64,000 nucleotides of DNA from Eutreptiella sp. 'Long Island Sound 2002' (GCA_964036045.1 OZ038378.1:142228001-142292000); one strand, 5' to 3'. Counted from the first letter of the stretch, positions 1-62,700 are shown. The notes: generated from the letters alone by a model not told the origin. Made by a program: numbers and translations.

Positions 1-299
1 GTCCGCAGGTTAAACCAAGTGTGGGACCACCCATGCATATATAGGGTTGCAGCGCAACCTTCATCCGCAACTTCCGGAATGATGTGCACAATATATGTGT
101 ACACCAAACCCATAGCTTGCCATGCTGCAGTTGCCAATGTAGTGCAACCGTAGCACAGGTGTACTATGTGGCAGAAGGCCAGAACCAAAGAATGGAAGGG
201 CAATGGGAGGACCATGCCCCCCGCCAGTCTGCCAATCACAGTGCGGGCCTCTCGGCCACTTAAGCTGATGCCTGCTTGGAACCTTCCTCGCATGAAGCG

Positions 300-2058: not shown

Positions 2059-2142
2059 CGCGAGCCTTGAGGGTTTGCAATGTAGAGTTCGTCTCCAGCG
2101 CCTTGCCCAGCGCAGCCCCTCCTTCCTTTCCGATTTTGTTGT
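2059..2142 (-). CDS. LRR exon 14 (type 1): (Y)NKIGKEGGAALGKALETNSTLQTLKAR
   Basis: 84 bp, CAG|...|GTATGT, phase 1-1. Downstream exons are not identified in the window. Confidence 0.88.
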
Positions 2143-3822
2143 CTGCATGTGTGCGTGTGGCTGTGCACACGCAGGTCTCCACAAACGCGCCCCGCTGCAC
2201 TCCACCAACACACGACCAACGGCGTCACCACCGGTCAGCCCATTCCACGCAATGCTCAGCGTTTCGCCCACTCAACACAACACCATTCCTTATGTTGTGG
2301 GGCATGCCACAAAACAGTGTACGCCCACATCGCCCTTTACACGCCCTTCACACACCCGTCGGACAGCTCCATCCAACAACCCAACACCGCGGCTTGTGAG
2401 GGAGCGGCCAGCATGTGCATGGCTACGGGGGGCGGGGGGGGCTGTGCGGCAGAGGGACGGTCCGTTCCAGCCCCCTCCCCAGTGCTCGACCAATGCCAGA
2501 TACAACGACCGGGCGGCAGTGCAGTCGCAGGAGGTGTTCGAGCCGCATTCTGCACCAGCACAGCACACACGCAAACGCAATGACAGGGCAACGCCACAAT
2601 AATGATTTGGTCACAAGTTCAGAGGGAGGGAGACTGTTAGGCAGTCAGAGGCTGCTTGCGTTAAGCGTTGATGGCTGAGACACAAACAACCACCCGGCGG
2701 CAGATTCCCGTGCTTCTCAGTTTTGAGGAGGAATGTCGGACAACAATACGAATGGAGACGGTAGAAATGGATGTCGAGCACAACGGGAAATCGATTGTTT
2801 TACGAATGTCCCAGGCAATGGCCGTGTGGTCCGGGTGCTACTTCGCATGTGTCGCGTGTACCTGCCTGAACAACTGCACATATGTTTGCCGTTGGAATCA
2901 CTGCATGCTCTTGTTCATAGTCGCCCTCCGGCGACGGATTTCTTGCCGGGCGCTGGGGTCGGGGCCCCGGCGCCGCCAGACCTCCGTTCCTAAACTTCAA
3001 GTAGAATACATCCGAGGGGGGGTAAGAAATTAGGACCCCCAAAACTACGGCAATCTGCCGTCTTGTCGCCCCTAGTTTTGTGCAGAATGAGCTGTAGATT
3101 TCGAATCTGCCTGTCTGATCCCCAAAAGCAGGCCAAAATCGTGATTTCCCTGGCGAAATCGGCCGAATTTCGTGAATCGCAGTCGGAAATCGGGTCCAGC
3201 GCCCCCCAATCTGTGGGATCCCCCTCCGTTCTGCACGATTTCCGAGCAGTTTCGCAGGATCCAGGAATTATTGACCCAACGAGGACCCGCTCCCACCCCA
3301 CCGAGGCAAAAGCTGTTGTCCCGCAGTGAGATTGTGGATAGCTTTTGTTACTTGAGAATTCAAAGGCAACAATGAAAGAAACAATGAAAGATCTGTTGCG
3401 TTTGTCGGCTGTTGCATTGATGTACAATGTATTTGTGTTCCGATTGTTTGTTTCCAGGCTGTCCCGTAGTCTACAGCTGATCATTGGTTGCCGCAGCAAA
3501 AAGGTTGGTGCAGCAGGGAGGTTTGCCGTTCAGCTGTATTTAGCCGCTGTGAGGTTTACAAACTTAGCGCCAGATGTGTCGCGTTCGTCGTCTGATGCAT
3601 TGATACACACTGCATTTGTGTTTCAACTGTTTGCCGTCCTGTAGCCTACAGCTGCTCATTGGTTGCCGCAGCCAAAACTTTGGTGCCGCAGGGAAGTTTG
3701 CTATTCAGTTTGATTGGACTCTGTTCAGGTCTGTTTTCGGCTTTGTGTCACTGCAATTGTGTTTGCATGCAAGACCTCCTGTTCGTGGTTGCTTGCATTT
3801 CCTGTGTTGCTCAGAAGGGTCG

Positions 3823-3990
3823 TGGGTTCCGTCCGTTACACTATGTGAGTTCCGTGGGGTCCAGAAGTCCACCGATTTTGCTCACCGGGCCGCTGCGTTG
3901 CGCAGGAGTTCAAGAGTGACCAGACGTCGGCCGTGCAGGTGATCCAGGATGCGACCGAGGCGTATTTGGTTGGGCTGTTTGCAGGTGCTC
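3823..3990 (+). pseudogene. H3: Histone H3 fragment (frameshifted, with deletions)
   Basis: WVPSVTLCEFRGVQKSTDF, then a frameshift to [28 protein letters not shown]. This aligns to H3 RPGTVALREIRRYQKSTEL...[31 protein letters not shown]. Confidence 0.85.
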
Positions 3991-4295
3991 TTCCAGTCTT
4001 GCATTGCACAGGGCCCCGGTGAAGGCAGTGAAAAATCCTTGTATTTCATGTCAGTTTCGTGTGTTGTTTTTAGCTTCCGGTTTTCTTTGTGCATTCTTTT
4101 GGGGTGAGCCTTTGTTGTAGGTTCCATTTTCGAGTTGCGGTTGTGTTTGGGTGTTGTTTTGTGTTTAATTTCCAGTTGGGAGGTTGCTGGGTTGAGGCTG
4201 GTTTGGGGTTCGAGTTTGGTTTGCAGTTTTGAGTTGCAGTTCAGGTTTGAGGTTTCAGGTTGGAGATTGAGTTCCGGTTCAGGGTGAGTTACGAG

Positions 4296-4298
<3 letters not shown>

Positions 4299-4354
<56 letters not shown>
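4299..4354. repeat. (GT)n microsatellite
   Basis: Pure GT run seen directly. Confidence 0.99.
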
Positions 4355-4357
<3 letters not shown>

Positions 4358-5105
4358 GAATGTGCTTGTAGGTGAGTTACGAGTGTGCTTGTGTTGCGGA
4401 TGTGCCGGTGGGTGAGTTACGAGTGTGATGGTGTTACGAATCTGCCTGTGGGTGAGTTACGAGTGTGTGGGTGCCACGATTGTGCTTGTGGGTGAGTTAC
4501 GAGTGTGTGGGCGTTACGATTGTGCCTGTGGGTGAGTTACGCGTGTGCTTGTGTCACGAATGTGCTTGTGGGTGAGTTCCGAGTGTGTTTGTGTTACGAT
4601 GGTGCCTGTGGGTGAGTTACGAGCGTGCTTGTGTTACGAGTGTGCCTGTGGGTGAGTTACGCGTGTGCTTGTGTTACGAATGTGCCTGTGGGTGAGTTCC
4701 GAGTGTGTTTGTGTTACGATGGTGCCTGTGGGCGAGTTACGAGTGTATTGGTGCTACGAATGTGCCTGTGGGTGAGTTCCGAGTGTGTTTGTGTTACGAT
4801 GGTGCCTGTGGGTGAGTTACGAGCGTGCTTGTGTTACCAATGTGCCTCTGGGTGAGTTACGAGCGTGCTTGTGTTACGATGGTGCCTGTGGGCGAGTTAC
4901 GAGTGTATTGGTGCTACGAATGTGCCTGTGGGTGAGTGACGAGTGTGTTGGTGCTACGAATGTTCCTGTGGGTGAGTTACGAGTGTGGTTGTGTTACCAA
5001 TTTGCCTCTGGGTGAGACACGAGCGTGCTTGTGTTAGGAATGTGCTTGTGAGTCAGTTCGAGTGTGTTTGTGCTACGAATGTGCCTGTGGGTGAGTTACG
5101 AGTGC
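4355..5105. repeat. ~40-bp minisatellite (GTGGGTGAGTTACGAGTGTG...), roughly 18-19 units
   Basis: GGTGAGTTAC recurs at 40-bp intervals (4451, 4491, 4531, 4571, 4611...). Confidence 0.95.
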
Positions 5106-5119
5106 ATAGGTGTTTGTCT

Positions 5120-5300
5120 AGTGCGATCGTTCTGATGTGTCTGTGTCATTTGCATCTGTGGCTGTCATTTGCGATCGTTCTGATGTGTCTGTGTCATTTC
5201 CATCTGTGGCTGTCATTTGCGATCGTTCTGATGTGTCTGTGTCATTTCCATCTGTGGCTGCCATTTGCCTCTGTGCCTGTCATTTGCATCTGTGTCTGTC
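5120..5300. repeat. ~48-bp tandem repeat, about 3 units (GCGATCGTTCTGATGTGTCTGTGTCATTT...)
   Basis: The unit restarts near 5122, 5171 and 5219. Confidence 0.9.
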
Positions 5301-6309
5301 CCAGTGTCTCCCTCCATCCATGCCCTTTCTCTCTTCTCTCAGGTGCAACGTAAGGTGTGAAGTCAGGTTGTCAGTTTTTGCTTTTTCTTGTTGTTTTGCC
5401 TGCGCCTGGTGGCGGTTTTTGGTTTTGGTTGGTGGTTTGGGTTCAAGTTTAGTTTCTGGTTAGTGTCCCGAGGCTTGGTGGGTTGGGGACTTTGGGCTTT
5501 GGTGCTCGGTGGGAGTGTCTTCGTTGGTTTGGTTTGAATTGGGAGTTTGGTGTAGAAGGTAAGCGGGTCAGGGATGTGGGTGCTTGCTGGCTTTGTGGGT
5601 ATGTTGGTGACTTGGGCCTGGGGGTTTGGTGGGCTTGGGATTTCAGAAAGAGGCCCTCCTGGGTTGTAACAAATATTCTTTTTGCAAGACAACACTTCAA
5701 GGAAAGTTTTTGGACAAAAAAATGACCGGTGAACGCAACAAAAATCTGATTTCCAGGGAAAAAGTTTCTTGGAATATTTTGGACCACAAAGTGCTCGATG
5801 AAATGTTTTTTGATCCAAAATGTTTTCAGGCAAATTGGTTTGCAGATTGGCTCATTTGGTTTCGGTTGTGATGGTTTTATTTTTGTCTTTGCCCCCGTGT
5901 GACCCGCCCATACCCACCTGCCCACACATGGTCATGCACAGGTGCACACAGTTGTAGAAGATTTCATTTTGGACAGAGAGAGTGACTGATTGCAATGGAT
6001 TTCCAGTGGAAATGAAGTAGTACAAACATGGCAAGGAAACCGAGTATGATTAGGCACCGGGTGCAATGCATTGTGAAGTGATTTTTGGTGGCCACGAAGA
6101 AGTATTGCAAACAAGGGAAAATAAGGAGAGCCCAAAAAAATGTTCCGCATTCATTTTTCAAACACAATTAAAGGGGACACACATTGGAAGCATGCATAGA
6201 TGTTGCATGGATGGGGTTGAGGGTGTGTCTAGTAGCTTCGGGCTAATGGGGGAAGTTTGGGGAAAGTTGGTGATGCTTGGGGTAGCATTTGGGTTGCCTA
6301 GGATATTTT

Positions 6310-7000
6310 GGGTACTCCAACCCAACCCACGGTGCCGCAAGGCCCCGCAAGGTACCCCATCCGAACGCAAGGAACCCCAAGCCCCCTCCAAGGTGATTCT
6401 TCCAACTTAATTAGGTCTCGGCCCCCCTCCAAGGTACCCCAATCCAACCCATCATGCCCCAAGGTACCCCAACCCATGTTACCACTAGCCCCCGCAAGGT
6501 ACCCCAACTCCATGCATGGTACCCCATGCCACCACAAGGTGCCGCAACCCGACCCATGGAACGCCAACCTCCCCAAGGTACCACCATCCAACCCATGGTA
6601 CCCTCACCCTGCCACAGGATACCTTGATGTTGCCCCGAGCAACCCGGGTACCCATGGTGCCCTAAGCTACCCCAACCCAATGTGTGGTACCCGAATGTGC
6701 CCTTGCCCCCCCCCCCCCCCTCCGTTGGTACACAGCCTGAAGGCCATCTATACCCATGTACCCGAACCCAACCCATAGTAAATTTAGTTTCTACACGGTC
6801 CCCCAACCAAACCCATGGGACCCAGGCACTCTTTCAGGGTGTTTAACCCGAACAATGGTACCGTAAGCTTCCCGAAGGTACCCCAAGCAATCCGATGTTA
6901 CCCGAAGCCCCCCCATGGTGCACAACCTAACCCCCAACGGTACACATGGTACCGCAATCCAATGTAAGTTACCCCAAGCCCTCCCAAGATAAGCCATGCC
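6310..7000. repeat. Degenerate GGTACC/CCCAACCC-rich satellite-like tract
   Basis: Many AAGGTACCCC and CAACCCAT submotifs at irregular short spacing. Confidence 0.7.
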
Positions 7001-8604
7001 CCTTTTGGGCACTCAACACTCAACACTTTTACCAAAGGCACCAAGGACTATTGTGGCTTGGATGGGATGGTGCGTAGCACCATCCCATCCAAGCCTGTGG
7101 CGCTAGCAAACGGGAAATCATGAAGGATTTCTTTTTTTTTATTTTTTTGGGACATTGTGTGTGGGGTGGGTGGGGAGTGGAGTGGATGGAGCGAGAGAAA
7201 GTGTCTCATAACCAAATCTTGATTGCCTTTTTGTTTGTAATTTGGAGATGGGCAGCTGCAATACAACATGCATTGGCCCACCCAATGACAATTTTGTGGC
7301 TGTGCAGATCCGTGACCTCCATCAACCACTTAGTGGTACCCTATCGGGTTCTTTTTGTTTTTGCGGATGAGTTCACCTCACCGCGCCCGCCACTTTTTAG
7401 GGCCATCGGTAGCTAGATGCATATATTGTTCTACCGTGCCATTTCCATCTGCGCTATTCCAAATGTGTGCGTTTTCGTCCAGTTTGTCGGGTGTCCGAAT
7501 GGATTTACATTGGGAAGGCCACATGTAGCTTTTGGGTAGAAGAAAAAAATAGCAAAAAAACTTGGTAAATTAGAGAATGTTCGAACTTTTTTTTTAACCA
7601 TTTGCAATATGTTGCCATGGGCTCCCCCACTTTTGGCATGCTAGATCCAAATGCACTACTTTTTGGGTAGCCAAATGTCCTACAGATTGTAACAACATGT
7701 TTACTTGCTCTGGAGACTGGCTTTTTTTGTCCGAAAACGGTGTTCATTCAGCACATTATAACAGCTTGTCTTCACTCGAGATGGCAATTCTGTGCTCCAA
7801 AAGAGCACTGTTCCCGTCTTTATGACCAATGACCAGCCCCCCCACCTTTGTGACTTCACCACTACGAGTGTTTTTGGGCCAAACACCGTAGTCCGCAGTA
7901 TCGGCAGACAAGCCATTGTTGTCTTTCAACCCGCAATGTTAGTAGGTTGTAATGACCAAAAGCTTTTGCTCAGGCAAAGATCACTAGCCACTCAGACAAG
8001 AAAACAACATGTAGATCAACAGAATTGGGGGAAAGGGAGAGATAAAAAGAACTTTCCAACTTGCCAAGTCTTAATCCCAAGTCAAACCCAAGCCCTGACC
8101 CTAACTGCTTGATGCAACTTGGACTACTTACCACTTGAGAGTCTGCTTGCCCTTCCTCGAATCCTGCCCTCCCGCTTGTTCAGTCCATTCACACTGACCA
8201 CAGCACATCGTACCATTCCTCGGCAGAGCAGGGAAACCATCAGACAAACCGTAAAACCGCATTCTAAACCACGAGTCAATGCTTCTGTGCAATGGGAAGG
8301 CCCAAATGCAAAGAAGGAACGTTAGCCCGTGCGGGCCTGGGGATGGGTGGTGCCCGCGCAAACCACACACACAGTACCCACACCCCTGAACCGTTCCCAA
8401 TGCCTAAGCAATCCCTGGCACCTCCAAATGTCTGCCACTGTCCCCCATCCGAGCCCACACCCCTAAACCCCTGCTCATCACCCATCTCACCACTGCCCAC
8501 CACAACTACAGTCCACACCTCCCCCATGCCTCTTCAAAGGCCCCTCCCCACACCACACCACCAACACCTACACACATGCCTCTCTCTACATCCACAAAAC
8601 ATAC

Positions 8605-8688
8605 AAGAAAGGCCAAGGCTTGTCAATGTGGTGTTGTTTTTCAACGCCGTCCCAAGTGCTTGTCCACCAGATGAGCCTAGTCCAATCT
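8605..8688 (-). CDS. LRR exon 13 (type 2): (K)IGLGSSGGQALGTALKNNTTLTSLGLS
   Basis: 84 bp, CAG|...|GTATGT, phase 1-1. Confidence 0.75.
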
Positions 8689-10379
8689 CTGAATGTGTGG
8701 CGATGGGGAATGGAGAGGGGGCGTGCACACCGCACATCACAACGTCCCCTCCCTCAAACCGCACGCAGCACGTCCGCCACAGCGCCCCCCATCGGAAGCG
8801 CCGCTTTCCCCTTCCCAAACGCTTGCGCACACCGAACGCCCACAGCCACACACCACGGCCACGGCCATGTGCCAAGGGGCGTGCCCATCCCCCATTAACT
8901 CATCGCGCCCCTCCACCATCCAGTCCTCGTCCGCCGCCACCAACGCCGCGGGGACTCCACAGCTGGTCCCAGTGCTACGCCGTGCACGTCCCACAAAACC
9001 ATGCATCGAAAAACGGGGGGATGAAGGATGAAGGGGGTCAGGCTGCAGTGCCTCACAAACAAAAGCGGACAAAAGCACATCCAGCTCAACGGTGCTATGG
9101 ACGGCTCGAGAAGATGCACAACCGCAGCACAACACAAACCCACTGGTGTGTGAAATGCATATAACACGTCTTCGCTCTACACGGCGGACGCCTCAACGCT
9201 TCCTAAATCCACCGCACTCCTCTGCTGTGGCAACCGTCACCGTACACTGTGTCGCCTGCACCTGCCAGAACCACTGCACATGTGTTTGCCGATGAAATCA
9301 CTGCAAGGCCTTGTTCCGTCTGTCCACACTGACCACAGCACAGCGTACAATTCCTTTGCAGAGTAGCGAAGGCGCACGCATGTGCGCATGTCGGAAGCAC
9401 CAGGCCTTTGCTAATTCCTTGGTGAACCATCGAGGCTGCCTACCAGCCAAGTTCAGCCCTCGGAGACCACCCGCACACCAGGACATAAAATTCGATTCAC
9501 CCACTGGCCGCCATGTGGCGCATTCTCGATCGATGACCAGTTCTACCCCCAGGCGCTCCACTACTGCTAGACCCTTCACATACCTCCACCCCCATGCGTG
9601 TGGTGTGCAGGGGCACCACCAGTCCCCAGGCCCGCAGGAGTGAATGTTGAGTTTTTGCATTTGGCCCATGCCATTTCACAAAAGCATTGACTTGTGGTTT
9701 ACAATGCGGTTTTTCGGTTTAAAAAATCGCCTACAAAAACGACATGCCCATACCCCATCAAGTGCAGCCCCATTCTGTGGCATAGGTTCTGGTGTTGTCA
9801 AAATATACACGCACAGTACCCCCACGGCCCATGCCCCAATATCCCCACACCCCCAAATCGTTCCCAATGCCTAAGCAATCCCTGGCACCTCTGAGTAGCA
9901 GAAAGCGTATCTGAAGGGGGTAGCTGACGGCGTACCCATTGGTACGCTCGTGATGTGGGTGAGGGGCTCTGCATGCTTTTTGGGCAGGCATTGCACAGGG
10001 CATCGGAGTGGCAGAAGCAGTGGGCGTTAGTTTGATGGTTCACGTGTTTGATGGGGTGCTGGTTGCTGTGCCTGTGAAAGTGGGCGGCAGGGTTTCTAGG
10101 GGTTCCACTTTCAGGTTGTGATGTGCCTGTGAACAGTTGAGTGACCTGCACTGTAAGTTTAGTGGGATGCCTTGTAGTACACCTGGTGTCCATTGCAGGT
10201 GCGGGTGCAGGACGGGGCGCGGGGGAGGGGTCCTGGAATGAACCTTTGACGCTTTTGTTCCGGAGCTAAGCTGCTTATGTTGCCACAGGCATTGTTCTGC
10301 ACCCCGTCAACTGCAATGCGCCAACCAGAACACAGGAACGAACCCGCGCCTTGTGTCTGCGTACGAGCACATCACATAC

Positions 10380-10463
10380 TGCGAACATCGAGGGTTTGCA
10401 ACGTAGAGTTCGTCTCAAGCGCCTTGCCCAGCGCAGCCCCTCCATCATCTCCGATTTTGTTCA
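10380..10463 (-). CDS. LRR exon 12 (type 1): (L)NKIGDDGGAALGKALETNSTLQTLDVR
   Basis: 84 bp, CAG|...|GTATGT, phase 1-1, LRR consensus. Confidence 0.92.
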
Positions 10464-11565
10464 CTGCATGTGTGCGTGTGGCTGTGCACACGCAGGTCCC
10501 CACAAACGCGCCCCGCTGCACTCCACCAACACACGACCAACGGTGTCACCACCGGTCAGCCCATTCCACGCAATGCTCAGCGTTTCGCCCACCCAACACA
10601 ACACCATTCCTTATGTTGTGGGGCATGCCACAAAACAGTGTACGCCCACAACGCCCTTTACACGCCCTTCACACACCCGTCGGACAGCTCCATCCAACAA
10701 CCCAACACCGCGGCTTGTGAGGGAGCGGCCGGCATGTGCATGGCTACGGGGGGGCGGGGGGGCTGTGCAGCAGAGGGACGGTCCGTTCCAGCCCCATCCC
10801 CAGTGCTCGACCAATGCCAGAAACAACGACCGGGCGGCAGTGCAGTCGCAGGAGGTGTTCGAGCCGCATTCTGCACCAGCACAGCACACACGCAAACGCG
10901 TTGACAGGGCAACGCCACAACACAGTGATTGGGTCACAAGTTCAGAGGGAGGGAGACTGTTAGGCAGTCAGAGGCTGCTTGCGCTAACCGTTGATGGCTG
11001 AGACGCAAACAACCACCGGGCGGCAGATTCCCGTGCTTCTCAGTTTGGAGGAGGAATGTCGGACAACGATACGAATGGAGACGGTAGAAATGGATGTCGA
11101 GCACATCAGGAAATCAATTGCTTTATGAATGTCCCAGGCAATGGCCGTGTGCTCCTGGTGCTACTTCGCATGGGGTTTCGGCATATTAGGTCTTGCGCAA
11201 GATCTCAAACCGGAAAACCGCATTCTAAACCACAAGTCAATGCTTCTGTGCAATGGGAAGGCCCAAATGCAAAGAAGGAACGTTAACCCGTGCAGGACTG
11301 GGGATGGGTGGTGCCCGCGCAAACCACACACACAGTACCCACACCCCTGAACCGTTCCCAATGCCTAAGCAATCCTTGGCACCTCCAAATGTCTGCCACT
11401 GTCCCCCATCCGAGCCCACACCCCTAAACCCCTGCTCATCACCCATCTCACCACTGCCCACCACAACTACAGTCCTCACCTCCCCCATGCCTCTTCAAAG
11501 GCCCCTCCCCACACCACACCACCAACACCTACACAAATGCCTCTCTCTACATCCACAAAACATAC

Positions 11566-49888: not shown

Positions 49889-51247
49889 TCAGGGCGGGCC
49901 AGCCCAACTCTTGATCCTGTGCGCAATGTAATCGAATTGCCCCGCAAGCGCATGGGGAGACGGTTGGCTGGTCCTGCTGCACTTGGCACCCGCATCCTCC
50001 GGCGTCTTGGGCTTCTTCTTGAGGTGATAGTACACGGCGTGCGATGGATCATTCTCCCGAGTCCAGCCCCCACAACGCGCTCCAGCCACGGTGCCGGGCT
50101 GCCAAGCCTCTTCTTGCTGCTCCTTGAGGAAATCCGGGCAAGTGTCCATAGGCCGTGGGGCAAACGGGTCCACAAACTGGAAAGTCCGGTCACCATCGAC
50201 CACCACCACGGTGCTTGGGGTTGTACCCCGGACTTTGACCTCGTAGTAGATGCCCTGTGCGGGCTTGTCACGGTCCTGGCCTGCGTCTGCGAAGCCGACG
50301 GGCTCTTCAGCCTGCAGCCACTCCACGCAGTAAAAATGGTCACAGCCCTGGGGCTGGACCCGCCCCTCGTCGTCAATGGCGGCAGAGGTCCCCTTCCACC
50401 GGGAGGCCTCGTACTGCAGATGGCAGGCACAGGGCCGAGGCGGAGCCCAAAACAAAGCCGGATGCCCCGGTTCCCAGCGCCAGTCGGCCTGTAAGTCCAG
50501 GGAAAAGCAGTGGATGGTCACGTGCTCTGCACTGCCCGGTCGGCCCCCAACGCCCTGATCTAGCACGAGCTGCTCCTCCCTGAAGCGCGGGCTGTGCATC
50601 AGGACTGCGCTGTACTCGGGAGGCCGTGGGTCAGGCGGTGGGTCAGGCGGTGGCTGATCGCTCGAGGCAAAGATCAGAAAGCCGTGCTTCACGCCGGTCA
50701 GGAAGCAGTAGCTCAGCATTTGATAGACGTCGGCCCAGTCCGGCAGGCCCCGTGTGCTCTGCTTCCATTTCACGTCCCCGATCACCAAATACAAGTTCGC
50801 GTCCGCCGCATCCCCGCGGCATGTCCACACAATGTCAGGCTCGGGAGTTCGGTTGGGGCAGAGCCGGGGGATGCAGTCCGTCAGCTTCTGCTTCTTGAAA
50901 CCGCGCTCCGTCACGTGCGGTGGGCCCCGGAGGGACTGCATCAGCGCTCGCCTGAGGCTGTTGCGCACCCACTGCTCGAACTTGTGGTACATCGAAAACC
51001 ACAACGAGGGGGCGTCCCCGAGCTCAGAGCTGCCGACTGAGGGCAAGGCGCACTGCAATATCATGGAGGCGTAGCGCAAGGCCGGCTCGTAATGCTGGTT
51101 CAGCAGCGTCAATGGCACGTGCGGCACAGGACAGAAATGTACAGAGGACACGCCGAGTTCCTCAAGGCCTTGAAGCCAGCCATGCGCCGCATCCGCCACC
51201 TCACCTTTGCTGTTTGTGGCAACGTGCTCCAGCGCGGCCTTGACCAC
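49889..51247 (-). CDS. mcrC: McrC-like nuclease, exon 4 (452 aa; PD-(D/E)xK domain plus C-terminal extension)
   Basis: TTGCAG| acceptor gives ...ENQ|VVKAAL. Motifs LLNQHYEPALRYASMIL, MYHKFEQWV, PDIV, IGDVKWK and ADVYQMLSY match McrC (RLN..Y..AL..A..IL; M..LFE..V; PD; D-x-K-Y-K; DxYQMxxY). TGA at 49889-49891. The spliced product is ~652 aa. Confidence 0.93.
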   Translation of the reverse strand: MVKAALEHVATNSKGEVADAAHGWLQGLEELGVSSVHFCPVPHVPLTLLNQHYEPALRYASMILQCALPSVGSSELGDAPSLWFSMYHKFEQWVRNSLRRALMQSLRGPPHVTERGFKKQKLTDCIPRLCPNRTPEPDIVWTCRGDAADANLYLVIGDVKWKQSTRGLPDWADVYQMLSYCFLTGVKHGFLIFASSDQPPPDPPPDPRPPEYSAVLMHSPRFREEQLVLDQGVGGRPGSAEHVTIHCFSLDLQADWRWEPGHPALFWAPPRPCACHLQYEASRWKGTSAAIDDEGRVQPQGCDHFYCVEWLQAEEPVGFADAGQDRDKPAQGIYYEVKVRGTTPSTVVVVDGDRTFQFVDPFAPRPMDTCPDFLKEQQEEAWQPGTVAGARCGGWTRENDPSHAVYYHLKKKPKTPEDAGAKCSRTSQPSPHALAGQFDYIAHRIKSWAGPP

Positions 51248-51364
51248 CTGCAATTGTCACAACCGGCTGTGTGGATGGCATGGTCCCGAAATACGTGGGA
51301 ATGGGGCTCCCGAAAAATTTTATTGCCTTCGGCAAGGCACCTTGAAGAGGGGAGAGGGACGACC

Positions 51365-52805
51365 ATTCTTGAGCTGCCGAGGCTGGAAAACTGCATAAGC
51401 AGGTTGTGCCCTAGACCCCTTGGGACCCCCCCCCCCAACACCCGAATAGGGTGAAAAACACATAAAGAGGGTATTGCGCTTCTATTGCCCATGAGCCTAT
51501 GTACAGAGGCCGAGGGGCTGGGGTGTGTGAAAAACACATAAAGAGGGGCTAAAACATGCTTTACATAGGATATTTGATCATTTTGGATGGTCAAAGTATC
51601 AAAAAAAAATCAGTTTCGGAAATTTCCATTTTTGAGCTGCTGAGGCCCGAAAACTGCGTAAGCAGGTTGTGCCCTAGACCCCTTGGGAGCCCCCCCCCCC
51701 CCCCCCAACACCCAAATAGTGTGAAAAACACATAAAGAGGGGCTAAAACATGCTTTACATAGGATATTTGATCATATTGGATGGTCAAAGTATCAAAAAA
51801 ATCAGTTTCGGAAATTCTATTGCCTTCGGCAAGTCAACCTCGCAGAGAATCTACTCCAAGCAACGCACACACGAAATAGGGAAAAAACAACATAAATACG
51901 GCCTAAAACATGCTTTACATACCTTGGATGGTCATTTTAGGTGATCATGGTATCAGAAAAATGAGGTTCGAAAACTTCGATTTTTGAGCTGCCCAGGGTG
52001 AAAAACTACAAAAGCAGGTTGTGTACCAATCCCTTGGGAGCCCCCCCCCCCCCCCCCGTAGCTAATACCCAAATAGGGTGAAAAGCACGTAAATACGGCC
52101 TAAAACATGCTTTACATACCTTGGATGGTCATTTTAGGTGATCATGGTATCAGAAAAATAAGTTTCGAAAACTTCGATTTTTGAGCTGCCCAGGGTGAAA
52201 AACTGCAGAAGCAGGTTGTGTACCAATCCCTTGGGAGACACCCCCCCCCCGTGCGCCCAATACCCAAATAGAGTGAAAAGCACGTAAATACGGCCTAAAA
52301 CATGCTTTACATACCTTGGATGGTCATTTTAGGTGATCATGGTATCAGAAAAATAAGTTTCGAAAACTTCGATTTTTGAGCTGCCCAGGGTGAAAAACTA
52401 CAAAAGCAGGTTGTGTACCAATCCCTTGGGACCCCCCGCCTGGACCTAATACCCAAATAGGGTGAAAATCATGTAAATACGGCCTGAAACATGCTTTACA
52501 TACATTGGATGGTCATTTTGGTGGTCATGGTATCAAAAAAACAAGTTTCGAAAACTTCGATTTTTGAGCTGCCCAGGGTGAAAAACTGCAGAAGCAGGTT
52601 GTGTACCCATCCCTTGGGAGCCCCCCCCCCCCCCCCCCCCGGACCTAATACCAAAATAGGGTGAAAAGCATGTAAATACGGCCTAAAACATGCTTTACAT
52701 ACCTTGGATGGTCATATTGTGTGGTCACAACATCATAAAACAAGTTTCAAAAACTTTGATTTTTGAGCTGACCAGGGTGAAAAACTGCATAAGTAGGTTG
52801 TGCAC
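51365..52805. repeat. ~195-bp tandem satellite (about 7 units, plus a further partial copy at ~53405-53620) in McrC intron 3
   Basis: T(A/G)AAACATGCTTTACATA recurs near 51550, 51746, 51905, 52101, 52297, 52486, 52685 and 53526. Confidence 0.93.
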
Positions 52806-54599
52806 CGGCCCATTCACCAAGCCATTATTGGTGGAAACAGTCATTTTGCGTCTTTGGCACGGGTTGTGACCGGCTCTCAGCAAGGCTAGAGACTGCAAAA
52901 AATGTCCTTCCGTATCCTAGTAGGCATATACTGTCACAACATCCCCACTCACAACCCTCAGAGTGGGTACCACGGGGTCACCGAGGTCTCCAAAACCGCC
53001 AACATAGCAAAAATGGCTGAAAAGTGCATAAACTGCATAAGCGCTCGTCCCACTCTGCCCCATACAAACCCCATGGAGTCGGGACCCGGAAACACTTTTT
53101 CGGCTCAAAACCAAAAAAAAAAGGGGGGGGGGTCATTTTTTGACCCCCACCCCCCACCCACCTCCCTCAAAACCTCAAAAAAGTGGGTTTCAAGTGGCGG
53201 GGGTCTAGGGGGGGTCCGGACCAAAAACTCATTGGGGGCGGCGTTTATTGGACAAAATAATGATTTTACAAGGGGTTAAACTAACAATTCAACCCCTTGG
53301 GGTAGGGTACACGAATGGGCCCAAAAAGGCCCAAAATGGGGGGGTATGTGGCGTTTTCCCCTATATACGCCTGCCTGGCTTTGATCTAACAACCTCTGCG
53401 GGATGAATTTCCATTTTTTAGCTGCCGAGGCCGGAAAACTGCATAAGTAGATTGTGCCCCAGCCCCCTTGGTACCCCCCCCCCCACACACACCCAAATAG
53501 TGTGAAAAACGCACAAAGAGGGGCTAAAACATGCTTTACATAGCATAATTTCATCATTGTAAGTGGTCACAATATCAAAATTGCAAAATTTTCCATTTTT
53601 GACCTGTAGAGGGTGGAAAACTGCTCAAGCAGTTCGTGCACACACCAAATGCCATTGAACCACCTACAAACAGCAATTTTGAAGCTTTTGGGGGGCCCAT
53701 GGCTCGGGCTAGATGGGCCCAGTGGCCACTACGTGGGTCCTCATGGGTGCTCAAGTACCCTTATTGTCACCAAATGCTCACCCAAACCCATCCTAGGGGC
53801 AACGGAAGGGTTTCATGAAAAATCGATTTTTCAAAAAACCTTCACGTGCCACTAAACAGCCTATCAAGCGTGAAAACAGATCAAGTGTGAAAGCGGCTAA
53901 GTCCCCACTGGCAAGGGTCCATATGGGGGGGGGGGGGGGCGACTGGGGGTACCTGGAGTTGGGACCCGGTACCCTCGCCATGGGTTAGGGGGTCCATATC
54001 CAAGAAAAAAGTTCTTCGGGACCCAGGTCCAAATACACACACAGCAGGCACGATACGCAAAGAAGTTTTGACCCCCCCCCCAAAAAAAGGGGTACCCAGG
54101 TGCGGGGAGGGTACGGGGGTCAAAATCCAAAAAATCATTGGGGGATCATTTTTGGTCCTAAAATGATGATTTTACAAGGGGTTAGACGTTAGAAATATTT
54201 GAGATATTGAGATATTTGATATTTGAATAAGATGAGATGACGGGAGGGCGAAAGTTTAAACTGGGCCACTTCACAGTGCAAGCACCAGCATTGTTTCTTG
54301 ACTACCCTGCAAATGCAAGCCCAGTTAAGAGCCCCTTCGCCCTCCCCTGGGCCCCAGGTGTTCGTGGACTCGATGGCATGGTCTGTTGTATGGGTCCTGG
54401 CGCAATGAACTGTGCGCCAGAGCGACTACACGGGCTCATGCAATGACACACTGGCTTTGCGCCAACTGCTCCAACCAGGAATGGCCAAGGTAAGAGCCCA
54501 GCGTGAGCCCAACAGAAGGAACGGGTTTCCCTTGTTGCACTTTTTTGCAAAAAAAAACCACTTGAAGTGTCTTCACCCGCCTTTTTGAGAAAAAAAACC

Positions 54600-55100
54600 C
54601 TCAAACTCATTAGGAGGGGCGTTCTCCATCACACAAACCCCAGGCATCATCTTTCATTGCCTCTCTCTTGACAGTGACCAGGGTCAACCAGAGGTCCTCC
54701 AAATCTGTGACGAATTTGCGGCGGGTTTGGAACAAGCCCGCGCTATTTCTGAATGAAGGAGCAAGCCCCTTGCCCATTCTGCTCCAAACTGCTCTCATAT
54801 CAAACGGGAGAGGGTCAGAGAGTCATTCAGGTGCAGACCACAGAGGTAGTGTGGTGCGGCTGTTGCGCTAACGCACCGTTCGGAATAGAGCAAAGGTAAA
54901 AACAGACGAAATTCGACAATGGCAACGGGGTGGTGTTTGACCTGTCCACATGCCTCAACCTTCTTCATGAGCTCTGGTGGATATCTGCATGCCAACTGAG
55001 TCGGATGCCCAATCCCATACTGCCAGTGCAGAAGCGATGGCACAGGAATCAAACATGCTGTGAACAAATACAGGTAGCAACCTGCATTTCTGAGCAAGGA
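54600..55100 (-). mobile_element. Probable LINE 3'-end relic in McrC intron 3
   Basis: Broken minus-strand frames (LHWQYGIGHPTQLAC...; RKFVTDLEDLWLTLVTVKREAM) with LINE C-terminal character. No catalytic motif seen. Confidence 0.3.
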
Positions 55101-55633
55101 TAGAGGGGCGCATCAGAGTAATTGTTAGCCACTGATGATGATATCAATCCTGCAACGTTCCTGGTTCGCCATCTGCTACAACCTGGTCAGAAACCCTGGG
55201 TGTTGGCATAGGGGACGTTTCTGCACAGCGCGGGCACAGCGCCCAATAGTAAGTTAGCTTTCCCATGACCACCCTGAAAACCACCCCCCACCGGGGGAGC
55301 TACGTCCACAGGGCAAAAACAGAAGGTTTAGACAGCAACCCGGCATTGTCAGTGTGAAACATGATTTGTTTTAACTCATTATCTGAGTTTTTGGACTGAG
55401 TAAGAGTCTGAGTAGTCCTGTGCATGGGAATACAGTAGTTATTGCGGTCACCTTGGCCATCAGGGAAAACGGGTCCAAAATAGTCTACTGTTCGCACAGC
55501 GCGTGCACAGCGCACGGTGCGCCCCCATAAAGGGACCAACAGAGACCAGATTCCTGGAAATTTGGAAGATGTTTGCAAAAGGATGCTGAGGAGGCGCCAG
55601 GGGCTGAGCAAGGAGGTTGGCTACGCAGATGAC

Positions 55634-55865
55634 CTGATTCTCCAGAACATCGGCGGTGTGTTCATCAAAGCGGCAGTGCACCGGCAGCATCAGTCCCATA
55701 CCCCGCCGCACGATTTCTGCAAAAATTGGTTTGCCCCGTAGCGTGTGCATGGCTGCCTCCCGTTGGGCGTAGTCATAACGTATCCCTTGGTCCCGGACGT
55801 CCTCTAAGGCCCGCAGTAGAAGACTGTACAGGATCCGCATTTCGCAGCCCTCTCCATCGGCGGTG
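55634..55865 (-). CDS. mcrC: McrC-like nuclease, exon 3 (TADGEG...QGIRYDY...TLRGKP...CRFDEHTADVLENQ)
   Basis: CCACAG| acceptor (phase 2, junction codon AGC) and CAG|GTCATC donor (phase 0). Carries the McrC G-x-x-x-x-Y...LRG(K/R)...C-x-(F/Y)DE-x-T-x-D-x-x-x-NQ motif. Confidence 0.9.
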
Positions 55866-56689
55866 CTGTGGTACAATCACAAAAGACCGCCTGTGCGCTC
55901 TCAAACGAGAAACAGCGCTGTCCCAATGATCTGTGCCCCGCCATCCCACGGGACCCGTCGTGCTGGTGCGGCGTGCCGCCTCTGCCACCGTCACCGGCCA
56001 AAACCCAACGCCCCAAACCGCAGACGACGAACACAACCCCGCGTGCATGTCAATGAGCACTTGTTTCAATGACAACACATTTTGTCATGCAAAACAAAGA
56101 AACTCAGTGGCCAGCTCCATGCCTAGGCCGTATCAGAAGAGGCGGCAGCCTCTTGCGGGGAGGGAAATGATGGCCGTCTTGAGTTGATTGATGGCAGTTG
56201 TGGGCTACCCGATGCCGATTGTCAGCCGCCTGCGCGCGATGGTCGCCATCCCACGCCAGTTCTAGACTGCTGGACTAGCCAGCCAACGGCAGTTCTACGG
56301 TATCCCACGGCACTGAAGGCCAACTCCCGGAAACTATTTCTCGCCCAACCGACAGGTTGACTGCCAACCGCCGGTGCGGCGGAGGATACTGAGGGTGTGC
56401 CCACTTGGCTTGGGTAGGAAATACCCATGTGGTCTGTACACACGGAGTGCCACAGATAGACACTGTCTGCGTGTTGTGGACCCTGGTTGAGTTGTAAGGC
56501 GCCGTAGGGGCCGTGAAACGCGCCGACCTGCGCCGATCTGTGCAGGTCCATCCGGGCGAGCACAGGATCAGACTGGCAATCCACCCTCTCTCAACACGAC
56601 CCCCTGTTCTTGTGGCACCAACTCTCGTCTTCGAAACTCTTGCAACAGGGGTTGTGCTGGAGCTCCGGGTCTACGAGGGAACGTGAGCG

Positions 56690-56985
56690 CGCCTGGCGCG
56701 CCCGCCACAACAACACAAAACACAACAACAACACCACCAACCGCAACGGCAATAACAGTAGCCGTCACCGCACAAACGGCAACCGGTGACCATAAAGGCA
56801 ACGGTACAACACCCGGACGCAACAACGAGCCCGGCAAAACAACCCACAAGCACGGCATGTACAAGGAACCGACACCAAACGATGCCGCCGGTGGCTGAGA
56901 ACCACCGTGGCACGACGTGGCTAGCCACGCCGGCCCGATACAACAACAATAACAACAAAAACAACAACAAAACAACAACGAACCC
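56690..56985. repeat. (AAC)n-rich low-complexity tract in McrC intron 2
   Basis: Runs of CAACAACAA. Confidence 0.8.
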
Positions 56986-57888
56986 CGAACGTGTCCCGCG
57001 TATCACAGCTCTTCCTCATGGCACGAGACCAAGGTTCAGGCGCCGCGCATTGAGCCGGCCACCGTGAGGAGACGCCGGAGCGGACCAACCGGATCGACGA
57101 ACTGATCCTGGCTAACTGAGACGTGCAGGAGGCGTCGGAGCGCGCAGGTACGTCCCTCCCACTGCACGGAACACGGCCGGGATGGCGGGCACGCGCACAT
57201 GCCACAGCACGCACGGAACCCATACACACATGCGAGGATACGGGGGAAAAAATCAACGCACCTAACACGAACGCAGGATACGATGGAGGAGGAGCAGACC
57301 AACGACGGCGACAACCAAAGGGAGACCACGTCGTCGACGCCGCGCACTCCGAGAAAGACCAGACCCCAAGGGATGGAACTACGGTCACCCAACCCCACAA
57401 GCCCTGAGATCCACTGTGCCCTAAACACGGAACGCAGCGCGGACCACGAGCCCATCACACACACACCCAGCCCCGCCTGCACGGAGTACAGCGCACACGA
57501 CGCGGCGCGCACCGGGCAAAGTTTCTACGGCCACCTCCAACCGTTGGCAGCATGTCTGTATGGGATTTTCTGACCTAACCTAGCACAATGGGATTTGGGC
57601 ACGTATTTTCGTGGTCGAGCAAGCAATGATTCCAAGAGATGTTGATATTGTCATTACACTCCCTCACCACCACTTCTTCCAATCATCCATGAATGACTTG
57701 TGCTTGTGCGATTGTGAAAAGGGTACCCCAAGCTCGGTATGATGGGGGTAAAGCATTGGGATAGATGACCTGAACATTGATTGGGATGCCGCCCGCGCAG
57801 GTGCGCGCTGGGCAAACGTTACCTCCACTGCCCTCCAAAAGACAGAAAACCAATCAGAAGCGGTACATAAAAGCTGTGCTGATGATAC

Positions 57889-58127
57889 CTGAAAATAGGG
57901 ATCGCGTGGTGCTGCCCTGTGGAGCCGGGCAGCAGCATGTGCATCAGGAAGTTGGAGTACGTCAGTCTAGCGCTGGGCTTGGGCTTGAGTTGAATGTAAG
58001 GGCAGGGCCCTGCCTTATTGGCAGCTGGAAGGGTGATGAGGCCTGCCAAACCATGTCCCGCCGGGCCTGGGGAGACCGAGTAGACTTGCTGCTGTGGATC
58101 TATGACCCTCACCGAGAAGCCCTGAGT
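57889..58127 (-). CDS. mcrC: McrC-like nuclease, exon 2 (TQGFSVRV...GLAGLITLP...IQLKPK...SNFLMHML...IF)
   Basis: CTCGCAG| acceptor and AG|GTATCA donor (phase 2). Carries the McrC N-terminal G-x-l-x-l...I-x-PK...n-l-x-x-ML signature. Confidence 0.85.
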
Positions 58128-59579
58128 CTGCGAGCAGAAGGCAACATGGGGTAACGCCCAGCCGTAGGGCCCTGACATTGTCACAATCGCTGATGGCCCC
58201 TAAAATCGAGTTGTGGCCATTTTAGTCACCCGGCCGGCACCAGCCGGGGCAAGTTTTCAAGCCGAAAAACACCCAAAATGGCAATAAATCGCGATTTCCC
58301 GGGGCTACGTGCATTTTCAGCAAATTTTGCGAGAGACAAAATCGAAGAGCACGACATTCCGCATCCGATGGTCAAAAGTGCCGCGCGTTTTGGGGCCCCT
58401 AAAATCGAGTTATGGCCTTGAGAGCTGCAGCGCCCTGACTACGCCACAGCGTCCCAGGCAGGACGCGTAGACCCCGGTCTCCGTGTGCAAACAGCAGTAC
58501 AATCACTAAGGCCGCGGATACAGCACCTCGTGCTGTTTGGCCACAGCCTCGACAATGGTCGTGAGCCTCCACAATCACTCTGGCATACTCGATGGTACGG
58601 CAATCACAACGCGGCGGAGCCACGACACACATAGTCCAGCAAGGCGCCGTTGGGCGCCACACAGTTTGTCTAACCCAACGCAAACGGCGCCGTTGCCCCC
58701 CCCCCCCCCAAAAAAAAGGGAAAACCCTGGTTGGGACAGTTGGGTGGGGCAGACTGAAAACAACAACGGGTGGGGGGGGGGGGGGGGGTGGCTTACAAGT
58801 TGAAGTTGATATTTGGGCTGGTGAGTACTGGTGGCTTTGTATCCCGTAATGACTTATGCGGGCAGTTTTGTGAGGCCCCGGCTGTTGCCGCCGTGTTGCT
58901 GATTGTAATCCATGATTCCTTGCGTCCCATGCTCCACAAACCTGCGCGGACACCGACTTGTTCAAACAGCACCAGGGAGGCGCACAGGAAGCGTCGGCGA
59001 GGGGGTCATTCACAAGCGTGACACACACACTCGGACCAGTCACCCCATATCATCATTCATAGTGCCCACACAACGAACAAGAAAACGTTCATCACTGACA
59101 AGCAGGCCCTGCCAAACCACGGCGCACACACACGCACGCGACCACACATCCACCGAGGAAGCGTCAATTCCATGGTTCCGAAAATGACAGGATTTGCACG
59201 TCACACTGTTCGGCCAAACAGCGGTGGGAAGTGGCGACGGCAACGAAATACCGAGTGCCGGACATCAGCCACAATTCCTGCAGCATTCAAACACCCAGAG
59301 TCACAGAACTGACTCGGGCCCGCAAGTCTGAGGCAGAGCCATCACTGCAAACCCAGGAAGGGGGGGGTCGGGTTGGGTTGGCACAGGGCCTCAAACAGGG
59401 GCCGGGTCCCAGGTCGCGGCTGGATTCCCTGCCTGACACTGGGGCTGCACCACCTGCTGGCCCGGCTCCAAGGCCGGCAAGGCAGCCCGTTCCAACCCAT
59501 AGGGGGCGGCAGGGGGGCTGGGGGTGGCTTGGGAGCGTGCTGTGCGAGCGGAGGCCCACTTGCGGCCGAAGGAGCATGC

Positions 59580-59708
59580 CTGATCTGCTTTGCTGCGAGA
59601 AATTTCGGTCTTGACCTCCTTCAAATGCCGGTGCTGCCTCTCCGTCAACTGGCACTTGAAAGGCACGCCCTCGTAGCAGGAGAAGCAGAGGTCTCTTGGG
59701 GACGTCAT
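59580..59708 (-). CDS. mcrC: McrC-like nuclease, exon 1 (43 aa: MTSPRDLCFSCYEGVPFKCQLTERQHRHLKEVKTEISRSKADQ)
   Basis: ATG preceded by a pyrimidine tract and an AG. Ends CAG|GCATGC (GC donor, phase 0), matching the phase-0 acceptor of exon 2. Supported mainly by phase and length. Confidence 0.6.
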
Positions 59709-62700
59709 GGTACCACTAGACGTGGCGCTGGGCCATTGCAGGGAAGTGGGTAGGGGCAGGAAATAGACTGGAAAAGGGTTGCATGAGCATCTGTGAGCGA
59801 TAGGAAGGGCAGGGACATGGTGCCGGAAAGAGGATGGGTGGTGTGTGTCGCTGTGTGCCCCGGACGAGAAGGACATGCAATGAAGCGCACGGGAGTTCCC
59901 AATCGTTCAGTGGGCAGTCGTGCCAACCGCCGACAGCCAACATGATGACTGTCACTTACACAAGAGCGTGAGCAACAACATGCATTTCCCTCGGCTGCGG
60001 CGGGGGGCTACAAGACACCCGCTGCAGGCTGAACCGTAGCGCCTCACCTCGTCTTAAGGCACTCCTCCCACAAATGACCCGCACACGCGTCCTGGGTGAG
60101 ATTTGAGAGACTGTGCAATTGGATTTTGTCTGTGGCGCGAGTCCCCTGCCAAAGAATAAAGAGGGGCATTTGAATCCGAGTCACAGGCTTACTCCTCGAC
60201 ATACACCTACTAAGCCCTACCAACACATTGTCCAACACAGGCGGCTGGTGCTGGTGGTGGTGGTGGGGTGCCACAAAGACCAAATGAATGGGTGGTCGGT
60301 ACTTCCGGATGCCTGTACTAGTTTACTGTATTGGGGGGGAAGGGAATCATCCACGTGTGGATGGGTGGGTGGTGTAGGAGGTGGAGGGGCCGGTGCATTG
60401 CAGGCGGTGCATTGCAGGCTGCACAGTGGTGTACGAAAAAATGGAACACACGGTTTGCACTGTATCTTCGGCTGGGTCATCGTTTTGGCGATGCCGCATG
60501 GCGTTCTTGCCGATGGCGCGCGGCCAACAAACATGCGCCCGCAATGCGCTGAGATCGATATTAGGACGCCGCGGAGGATTGCTCCAACATCCTGCGTGAG
60601 GGTACCAAACACATGCCGGAATCGTGTATGAACGCGTCCAAAGCACGGCTGGTGCACTAGGGGGCAGGACAAGCGCAGTGGACGGGGAATTGGAACCGAT
60701 TTTTCTTTGATAAAGGACACCAGTGTGATGAACTCCGGGAGCAGACCACCGGGGCTGCGCTATACGATGAGTGCACGCAGAGGCAACTACCCGCGACGAT
60801 GCCCCTAGTAGCTGGCGTCGCCTTTAACCCATGACACTACCCCATCACCGCAAGCACAACCATAGCTGGACTGGGAAAGAGAAACCGCGTTGTTGAGGTT
60901 CAAGTGTGAGCGGGAGATGCACAGAGAGCAAAACGCCGGGGTATGAAGCTCAGCGAGCAAGCGTGTACACAGAGAAGGCTTAACAAATGTCGCGGGCATC
61001 TGCCGTTAGGTGCCGGCCCGTCGTCCAACATCGTAGTGAAACGTAGCAAACCGGAGCAAAGATTTTTCACAGCAGCCTAGCACGAGCTGCAGATCATGCA
61101 GCACCTCGATCGGCAATGCTTCAACACGGGTGGTGGTGCTGCGCGCGAGGGTTGTAACCACATGGTGCAACACACAGCGAAGGCACGAAGAGCAAACAAC
61201 CATAACCCTGCCAGAGTGCATGAAGCAAATTGTCGTCAACTTATCAGTTAGCGGAGACATGAGCGAACACTGGGCCTACATTTGCATGCACGCAATGCCG
61301 CATCCAAAAAAGGACCCCCCCCCATCAAGGCAGTGTCGTGTGGTCACCGTGGCCCGCTGATGTGTGACAGCGCAGGTACACCCGAGGTCTGGGTTTCTAC
61401 TTAGGTCTTCAAACGTCCTACGCTATGAGACGGGTGTCAACAGTGCAAAAACCGGTAACTCAGCCCCAAAATAGAAAGGGGCCAAAACAAAACAAAACAA
61501 AACAAGCACAAACTAAACTATCCTGATCAGAGTCATCAACATACATCTTAGCAATACTCCGACGCAGGAACCACTGTTGGGCCTCGGCGGACGAAACATC
61601 AAGAATTCCTTCTTCCCACATCTCTTGCGGGGGGCCACTAGAATAGTGATGATGCACATTGTATCTGTCTGAGGTTGGTCAAAGGCAACGCGAATGTACG
61701 GCAGTAGTGCATGTCGTTGTTTCCGGAGTGGTGGAATTGGAGCGACCTGAAAAGGGCTATCAGAATACACGGGGCATAGTTTGCACAACGGCACGGCCGG
61801 AAACTAGCCAAGGAACTGCAGGCCGCCCTGTGGTACCTAGCTGCAGGGCCTCTCGCTGTTTCATTGTGAAAACGTGATGTTGAACGATGTTGGCTCGGGG
61901 GATCAATGGTCGGTTCCGATAGACTGAATGTCCCCGCCATAGACAATTCCAGCCATTAGTCCAGCAGTACTGTGTAGCTCAATCAATGCAATGTTGGCTC
62001 GGGCCCCACCGCGCTCCTTGCAGACTTTGGGTTGTCCCAACCCATAGGCATGCAGAGACAGCACGCTCGTACACCATCGTACCTATCCAAGGAGTTGGTA
62101 TACGCCCCCGTGCATGGAAACTAGGACGGGTTCGGGTCCGTGATGGTACTTTACGGACTGCATGTTAGATGCGTGCTTCTCGGCGCCTAGGTGTGTGGCG
62201 GTGGTGATTGTGTGCAGTAGACGCACATTAACCAACTGCTGGAACATCACAGGTGCCTACAGTCATCACTGGTTCATTGATCAATGCCTTACCATTTCAT
62301 TTTTCATGGGCATGTCTACTGCTCAGCATTGCAGCACGGATGCAGATGGCTTTATTGTGCCAGCACCCTCTCTCTAATATATTGCGTGCCATGACAAAAG
62401 CCATCCGCAAATGCTGCGCGCGCACCCTTTTTGTGTGTCACTGCATCCATTGATTGGGCTGTGACAGTGTCATGCTTCATACCTGCACCACCGGAAGAAA
62501 TCACACACTTGCTTACACAGTGGCTACGTCGACAAGCAGTATGGTGGCAAAACAATTATGCCTCGTGGCATGTCCCACACACCGATCCATGCTTAGCACA
62601 TTGTGCCCATTGGCGCACAGACTAAAACGTACTGTCCAATCTGTACATAACTGTCAAATAATGGGAGGGGGTGGGGGTTGTAGTTTTCTAACTGTGTTGT

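Follow-up and report, generated by a model that had tools for sequence, protein, structure and literature searches.

We analysed a 64,000-nucleotide (nt) stretch of the Eutreptiella sp. 'Long Island Sound 2002' genome (GCA_964036045.1 OZ038378.1:142228001-142292000; hereafter the window, to which all coordinates refer) and describe here a split gene on its minus strand that encodes a homolog of McrC, the DNA-cutting subunit of the bacterial antiviral restriction system McrBC. The gene spans 9.8 kb and contains three introns in our model (Table 1). Its four exons join in phases 0, 2 and 0, as the first-pass annotation of this DNA had proposed, into 1959 nt—652 codons plus a stop—and the spliced frame is free of internal stop codons. 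By sequence, profile and fold, the product is a genuine member of the McrC family, and the gene is an apparently intact, intron-interrupted mcrC resident in a eukaryote's own chromosome.

Table 1 Features of the Eutreptiella mcrC gene, with GC content at the three codon positions (GC1/GC2/GC3) and codon-usage correlation to the McrC domain, in frame versus in the two shifted frames. Slashes within sequences mark splice junctions; TRF, Tandem Repeats Finder; NLS, nuclear localisation signal; AF2, AlphaFold2; pLDDT, predicted local distance difference test.
Feature	Position	Strand	Description	GC1/GC2/GC3	Codon-usage correlation
Putative exon 1	59580-59708	-	aa 1-43; ATG at 59708; frame and phase fit, codon periodicity	.47/.42/.77	0.40 vs -0.10/0.20
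Intron 1	58128-59579	-	1452 nt; GC-AG as modelled; very high-copy repeat at ~58000-58600		
Putative exon 2	57889-58127	-	aa 44-123; phase 0 to 2; pyrimidine tract and CAG acceptor, donor AG/GTATCA	.60/.48/.71	0.36 vs 0.19/0.07
Intron 2	55866-57888	-	2023 nt; GT-AG; (ACA)n microsatellite, A-rich stretch, high-copy repeat at 57400-57799		
Exon 3	55634-55865	-	aa 123-200; McrC helical-bundle part, R-G-(R/K) motif (TLR166GK), DEHTADVLENQ		
Intron 3	51248-55633	-	4386 nt; GT-AG; splits ENQ/VVKAAL; repeats at 54000-54199 and 55200-55599		
Exon 4	49889-51247	-	aa 201-652; stop codon 49889-49891; remainder of the finger bundle, PD-(D/E)xK nuclease domain, C-terminal extension		
McrC domain				.61/.45/.81	reference
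Leu248, codon CTG	51104-51106	-	aligned to TgMcrC Arg263 and EcMcrC Lys157 (profile alignment to solved chains)		
Nuclease active-site codons	50762-50836	-	D338 (PD), D358, K360, K362 (GDVKWK); invariant columns in the 71- and 150-sequence alignments		
12-nt tandem repeat	50621-50653	-	found by TRF; codes for the Pro-rich insert PPPDPPPDPRPP (aa 399-410) within the terminal part of the McrC domain		
Lineage-specific C-terminal extension	49892-50491	-	aa 453-652; 200 residues, A/P/G/D-rich, hydrophilic	.66/.52/.73	0.68 vs 0.21/0.26
KKKPK	50006-50020	-	aa 610-614; putatively NLS-like		
Terminal helix	49901-49951	-	aa 633-649; AF2 pLDDT ~80		

Family membership was established at the level of individual exons as well as of the spliced product. 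Against the Pfam family PF10117 (McrBC; profile length 318, gathering score 23.9 bits), exon 4 matched over residues 3-193 (profile 133-317; 47.4 bits, expectation value (E) 1.6e-12) and exon 3 over residues 11-77 (profile 64-130; 28 bits, E 1.4e-6), both above the gathering score and collinear across the 4.4-kb intron that separates them; the NCBIfam McrC equivalog also touched exon 3 (region 42-108). A custom McrC profile, built from 86 full-length bacterial relatives, recovered exons 4 (E 7e-37) and 3 (E 1.4e-17); in all six reading frames of the window, no other match was better than E 3.8. The same profile aligned the spliced product as a single domain of 195.8 bits over profile positions 100-355. 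When the exon-4 product was searched with phmmer against 1.84 billion representative proteins, 158 matches were returned (best E 4e-10, 39% identity), all of them distant and covering only its residues ~30-200, and those that bore a name were McrC. Among solved chains, a family profile that included the Eutreptiella protein found the McrC of Thermococcus gammatolerans (E 4.4e-42) and that of Escherichia coli (E 1.6e-32). The AF2 model, made for the exon-4 product only, reached a pLDDT of 85-94 over core residues 1-200 and of 89 in the last strand, and its five best Foldseek matches in the PDB were McrC chains (6hz4_M/N, 7vsr_M, 6ut7_G, 6ut6_G; probability 0.99-1.0). The McrC homology first read from motifs is thus borne out by the Pfam family, the full-length profile and the fold.

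The homology also defines the gene structure. When exon 3 is read through its donor, similarity to McrC ends right past ...DVLENQ, and it restarts with VVKAAL at the exon-4 acceptor; splicing rebuilds the conserved 'eeNrlLkaAl' as ENQ/VVKAAL. Because similarity breaks at the donor and resumes at the acceptor, with the conserved motif restored, intron 3 is proven by homology. The donors of introns 2 and 3 are GT (AG/GTATCA and CAG/GTCATC), and all three introns end in a CAG acceptor that follows a pyrimidine-rich tract. The sole non-canonical site is the exon-1 donor (CAG/GCATGC), for which an in-frame GT alternative (GAG/GTCAAG) lies 36 nt upstream and would end the exon at 59616, making it 12 codons shorter. 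Hence, of the introns that had been annotated, at least one is proven by homology, while two further introns are probable.

The evidence for exons 1 and 2 consists of their frame, splice signals and codon periodicity; as they do not significantly resemble the bacterial N-terminus, we treat them as probable rather than proven. Exon 2 carries 'IQLKPK...FLMHMLL' at nearly the spacing from the conserved core that bacterial proteins show for 'IRPK...LFLLSYA', and in this exon the DNA contigs do not differ from the window. Among the McrC motifs listed in the first-pass annotation, those of exons 3 and 4 are real and conserved, whereas the 'PK...ML' of exon 2 is rightly spaced but not significant: hhalign selects this PK motif at E 0.46. 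Exon 1 gives a collinear match to the McrC N-terminus that is weak and likewise not significant. An upstream extension of the open reading frame to an ATG at 59876 was rejected, 59709-59876 being devoid of codon periodicity, as was a further upstream frame (60047-60322) that is short, His/Gln-rich and of low complexity.

Codon composition gave a signal that was independent of any database match. Exon 4 had the strongest coding periodicity among the open frames in the window, and the open frames containing exons 3 and 2 also ranked within its top dozen. The excess of GC3 over GC2 starts exactly at the exon-4 acceptor, spans the whole frame and ends right past the stop codon, and in exons 1 and 2 as in the C-terminal extension codon usage correlated best with that of the McrC domain in the annotated frame (Table 1). 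In the same codon-position GC test, periodicity was absent from 59709-59876, from the read-through below the exon-1 donor (59391-59579) and from the introns. As periodicity persists to the stop, we read the C-terminal tail as coding.

Is the gene truly part of the eukaryotic genome? Contigs from four sequencing runs, of which X1-X3 proved to be DNA, were aligned to 54000-59999. In X1 and X2, unique sequence was evenly covered through exons and introns at a word depth of ~21-28, the exons matching the unique flanks, and contigs of independent runs from two samples bridged the exon-intron borders with 0 mismatches. Four segments within the introns (listed in Table 1) are very high-copy dispersed repeats, with a summed word depth of 1e3-5e5 in the DNA runs compared to ~20-28 for unique DNA. 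That all nearest relatives are prokaryotic could be accounted for by contamination with bacterial DNA or by a chimeric assembly mimicking a split gene. However, we consider this explanation extremely improbable and set it aside, because DNA coverage is even across exons and introns, and the latter carry very high-copy host repeats. Moreover, homology is cut exactly at GT..AG borders by 4.4 kb containing such repeats, the best identity to any prokaryotic protein is 39%, and neither the codon periodicity nor the tail is bacterial-like. The earlier argument that repeat-filled introns oppose contamination is therefore upheld by the depth of the DNA runs and the border-bridging contigs.

Several further observations concern the exons and their surroundings. 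Contigs from other copies of the repeats join 55526 to ~58770, and joints that 'go back' by ~198 nt occur at 58200-58400, which suggests that the intron repeats are related elements that are tandem in other copies. DNA depth steps from ~21-28 over 54.2-58.2 kb to ~47-64 over 58.8-60 kb, and the 58450-60000 contigs of either sample are 1-3% divergent from the window; among the differences are an indel of 2 nt at 59359 (intron 1) and two single-nucleotide polymorphisms in exon 1 (59703, synonymous; 59633, changing H26). The depth step and the variants at 58450-60000 possibly reflect diverged haplotypes or a duplicated segment. A patchy presence of exon 4 in the 'organism B' runs X4, X6 and X10 looked exon-specific, yet low-coverage long-read DNA explains it equally well, and we did not use it as evidence of expression or conservation. 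Within the introns, 56500-57500 (intron 2) is strongly A-rich and T-poor on the plus strand (AT skew +0.47 to +0.50), with (ACA)n at 56940-56979, and in intron 3 a 195-nt unit is tandemly repeated at 51874-52806 (4.8 copies, 89% matches).

The nearest relatives of the Eutreptiella protein are prokaryotic, and in all readable contigs an AAA_5/McrB_lid gene immediately precedes the one for McrC. With bacterial mcrC genes directly behind mcrB as its closest kin, horizontal acquisition—already suggested in the first-pass annotation—is the natural reading, and it gains support from these data. A FastTree phylogeny of the McrC core placed the protein inside a 10-member clade with a support of 0.95, its sister relationship receiving a support of only 0.42. 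A viral route of transfer is not supported.

The bacterial two-gene McrBC operons (the nearest clade P0061/P0021/P0049, but also P0004 from a Planctomycetota metagenome-assembled genome (MAG), P0010 and P0003) encode the same McrC domain over profile positions 100-355, that is, a helical bundle plus a PD-(D/E)xK nuclease. They have the invariant E, PD, DxK, K and D..YQ..Y in common with the Eutreptiella protein, at a local identity to it of at most 39%, and their final beta-strand 'IxVxxLDL' corresponds to its last McrC strand, HVTIHCFSLDL (residues 442-452). In contrast, the bacterial genes are intron-less, encode ~400-440 aa and lie 0-50 nt behind an AAA_5/McrB_lid gene, whereas the Eutreptiella gene has three introns, a Pro-rich insert, a 200-aa tail and a Leu at an Arg-finger-like position. 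At 187-11272 of a Planctomycetota MAG contig, a canonical McrB-McrC pair stands in a defence-island-like neighbourhood, flanked by genes for an SLFN-g3-type helicase and a MazG-like protein and, on the other strand, by a DUF2357 (McrC N-terminal-like) gene.

The nuclease site is complete. E291, P337-D338, D358, K360, K362, D373, Q376 and Y380 are all present, in columns that are 95-100% conserved among 149-150 relatives; the catalytic residues, described as intact on first inspection, proved to be so in both the 71- and the 150-sequence alignment. Of the 26 columns conserved in at least 90% of the relatives, 23 are kept. Two of the three misses are conservative (Y to W and Y to F), and the sole non-conservative one is an R to L exchange in 'LTRLNxHY'. 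The 'LNQHY' motif, which had been listed as intact, therefore has a Leu in place of its near-invariant Arg.

This residue, Leu248, occupies a position of known function. The basic residue found there is placed by McrC at the active site of McrB, and when it is mutated to alanine, the stimulated GTP hydrolysis is selectively lost (Niu et al. 2020, PMC7680126). Arg fills the column in 136 of 149 relatives; the other 13 (~9%) are bacterial McrC proteins with mostly Pro instead and are scattered on the tree (P0008, P0010, P0012, P0016, P0018 and others). One of them, P0010, is nonetheless encoded directly behind an mcrB gene. Loss of the Arg is thus unusual but precedented, since 13 relatives lack it and at least one of these still adjoins McrB, and the 'highly conserved arginine' is not universal in McrC. 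The modified-base specificity of McrBC resides in the N-terminal domain of McrB, not in McrC (PMC7641849).

The McrC proteins of E. coli K-12 (EcoKMcrBC; PDB 6HZ4, 6UT6) and T. gammatolerans (6UT5/6UT7) share the fold of the modelled part and the PD-(D/E)xK site, at only 11-13% identity in the structural alignment, and they differ in having Lys157 and Arg263, respectively, where Leu248 stands here, and in their N-terminal stalk, which is not recognisable in the Eutreptiella protein. Variant prokaryotic systems such as the CoCoNuT type, in which McrC (CnuC) has taken on further domains and been rewired, show it to be a modular scaffold and set a precedent for non-canonical McrBC relatives (Bell et al. 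2024, PMC11090510). In many of these variants the nuclease is missing or inactive, and coiled coils and CSD or HEPN partners have been added (PMC11090510); in contrast, the Eutreptiella nuclease site is intact, its host is a eukaryote and Pfam detected no such domains.

Two segments of exon 4 set the protein apart from its bacterial relatives. The Pro-rich stretch is an insertion relative to the bacterial proteins in the alignment, and beyond the last McrC strand follows the tail, which AF2 modelled with a pLDDT below 40 everywhere but in the terminal helix. Exhaustive phmmer, Pfam and Atlas searches found no homologs of the tail, and neither a family nor a fold was assigned to it by Pfam, PADLOC, PDB sequence search, Atlas features (at most 0.72) or AF2; a match to HdeA in the PDB sequence search was dismissed as chance (E 0.03). 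The tail may be a eukaryote-acquired disordered extension, possibly with an NLS. Such a tail could provide partners and nuclear targeting to an McrC scaffold that was co-opted without any McrB-type motor, as a stand-alone eukaryotic nuclease that might serve, for example, in repair, recombination, the control of transposons or programmed DNA processing. This scenario would fit with the absence of the McrB-stimulating residue, with the 132 N-terminal residues that are not recognisably McrC-like and with the newly gained tail and its KKKPK. Yet we find it doubtful: the helical-bundle part of the finger domain (profile 100-230), including RG(R/K) and LN.HY, is well conserved, as would be puzzling if there were no ring to bind, and in the systems described in PMC7641849 and PMC7680126 McrC acts through McrB, with no stand-alone McrC activity described there.

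We favour the view—at a probability of roughly 0.6—that the gene encodes a functional, horizontally acquired McrC-type endonuclease that is the effector of a rewired McrBC-like module. Judged from its sequence, the gene is a real, horizontally transferred and probably functional mcrC variant. In the course of events that we envisage, a bacterial mcrC gene would have been acquired by a microbial eukaryote, in which it now resides as a nuclear gene. Since the transfer, it would have gained three spliceosomal-type introns, a host-like codon periodicity, the Pro-rich insert and the 200-aa disordered tail with the NLS-like KKKPK. The protein would be made, enter the nucleus and act as a Mg2+-dependent DNA endonuclease, docking as an effector via its conserved helical-bundle 'finger' on a McrB-like AAA+ partner. 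As the residue that switches the McrB GTPase is Leu248 here, the coupling of motor and nuclease would probably be unlike that in E. coli and T. gammatolerans, and the choice of target would probably lie with the partner rather than with McrC.

Several results weigh against a functional effector of this kind. None of the RNA-labelled sequencing runs searched contains exon 4, and no McrB-like sequence was found in the window with a single McrB sequence or a 5-sequence profile. On the side of the protein, the basic residue by which canonical McrC stimulates the McrB GTPase is replaced by Leu248, and the first 132 residues, where the stalk that plugs the McrB ring would be expected, show no significant similarity: exons 1 and 2 score 3.3 bits against the McrC N-terminal sub-profile, equalled by 1 of 500 shuffles. 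The protein is, moreover, an isolated one. Its terminal branch is the longest in the tree (1.73 substitutions per site, median 0.56), and no close relative was returned by the phmmer search of the 1.84 billion representative proteins, by a word-based protein search or from IMG/VR. Nothing close was found in JGI metagenomes either (best match 33%), and plasmids gave one haloarchaeal match at 31%.

Taken at face value, the missing RNA support and the long branch—with a mean core identity to relatives of 27%, the lowest among them, versus 38% among the bacterial sequences—are also what would be expected of a silent or decaying relic, in which an mcrBC operon was transferred and mcrC, left unexpressed or functionless, is in early decay, with the Arg loss as its first lesion. 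The R to L exchange at a functional site that is 91% conserved, the unstructured tail devoid of homologs and the fact that relatives in other eukaryotes were not found could be cited in its favour, too. Nevertheless, an intact frame, codon periodicity and the fact that functional residues have been selectively retained make a relic unlikely. The 652 codons run over four exons without a stop or frameshift, canonical splice sites are kept and strong codon periodicity extends through all exons, including the tail, to end exactly at the stop. In addition, 23 of the 26 conserved columns and every nuclease residue have been kept despite ~1.7 substitutions per site, which neutral decay would not spare, and the Arg is also missing from 9% of the bacterial McrC relatives, with P0010 still behind McrB.

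A more elaborate version of a functional module would have the whole of McrBC domesticated as an NLR-like innate-immune machine, in which a sensor made of a leucine-rich repeat (LRR) array and fused to tandem McrB-type AAA+ domains recruits the McrC nuclease. Here, the McrC-to-McrB GTPase trigger would have been deleted (Leu248), so that activation would come from ligand sensing instead of modified-DNA tracking. We hold this version to be improbable as well.

McrBC machineries are said to 'lack eukaryotic homologs' (PMC7680126), the CoCoNuT census, which left out eukaryotes, states that no eukaryotic McrC homologs have been reported (PMC11090510), and our searches of the literature brought up no eukaryotic McrC. 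An intact, intron-bearing protist McrC would for this reason place McrBC among the few defence systems of prokaryotes that eukaryotes have adopted. The McrB half has crossed into eukaryotes, to go by the passages on animal Navigators in the citing papers, which describe these as McrB-branch AAA+ proteins (Iyer et al. 2004, cited in PMC9877351, PMC11090510). Navigators, which are animal proteins with cytoskeletal roles, correspond to the McrB half alone and have no associated McrC (PMC9877351, PMC11090510), whereas here it is the McrC half that occurs, in a protist. The gene also constitutes a natural experiment: with the nuclease site kept and the GTPase-trigger residue replaced, it may reveal how the wiring between motor and nuclease can change. 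Should the host be a euglenid, a further aspect comes into reach, as euglenid DNA carries the modified base J (PMC1874636). In that case, base J would make the discrimination of self from non-self by a modification-linked nuclease directly testable.

Outside the gene, the window holds further repeats. Pfam recognised no domain in 40 of the longest open frames of the flanks and the repeat array, and motif and 84-nt-exon scans found no LRR exons at 1-16 kb. The array occupies 1700-37500; in it a ~2.3-kb unit recurs at least 11 times, its copies being 95-100% identical and spaced at 2294-2297 nt or more, and its long open frames (216 aa on the plus strand, 212-267 aa on the minus strand) have neither a Pfam match nor coding periodicity. 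At 4343-5104 lies a tandem repeat with a 40-nt unit, present in 19 copies with 83% matches.

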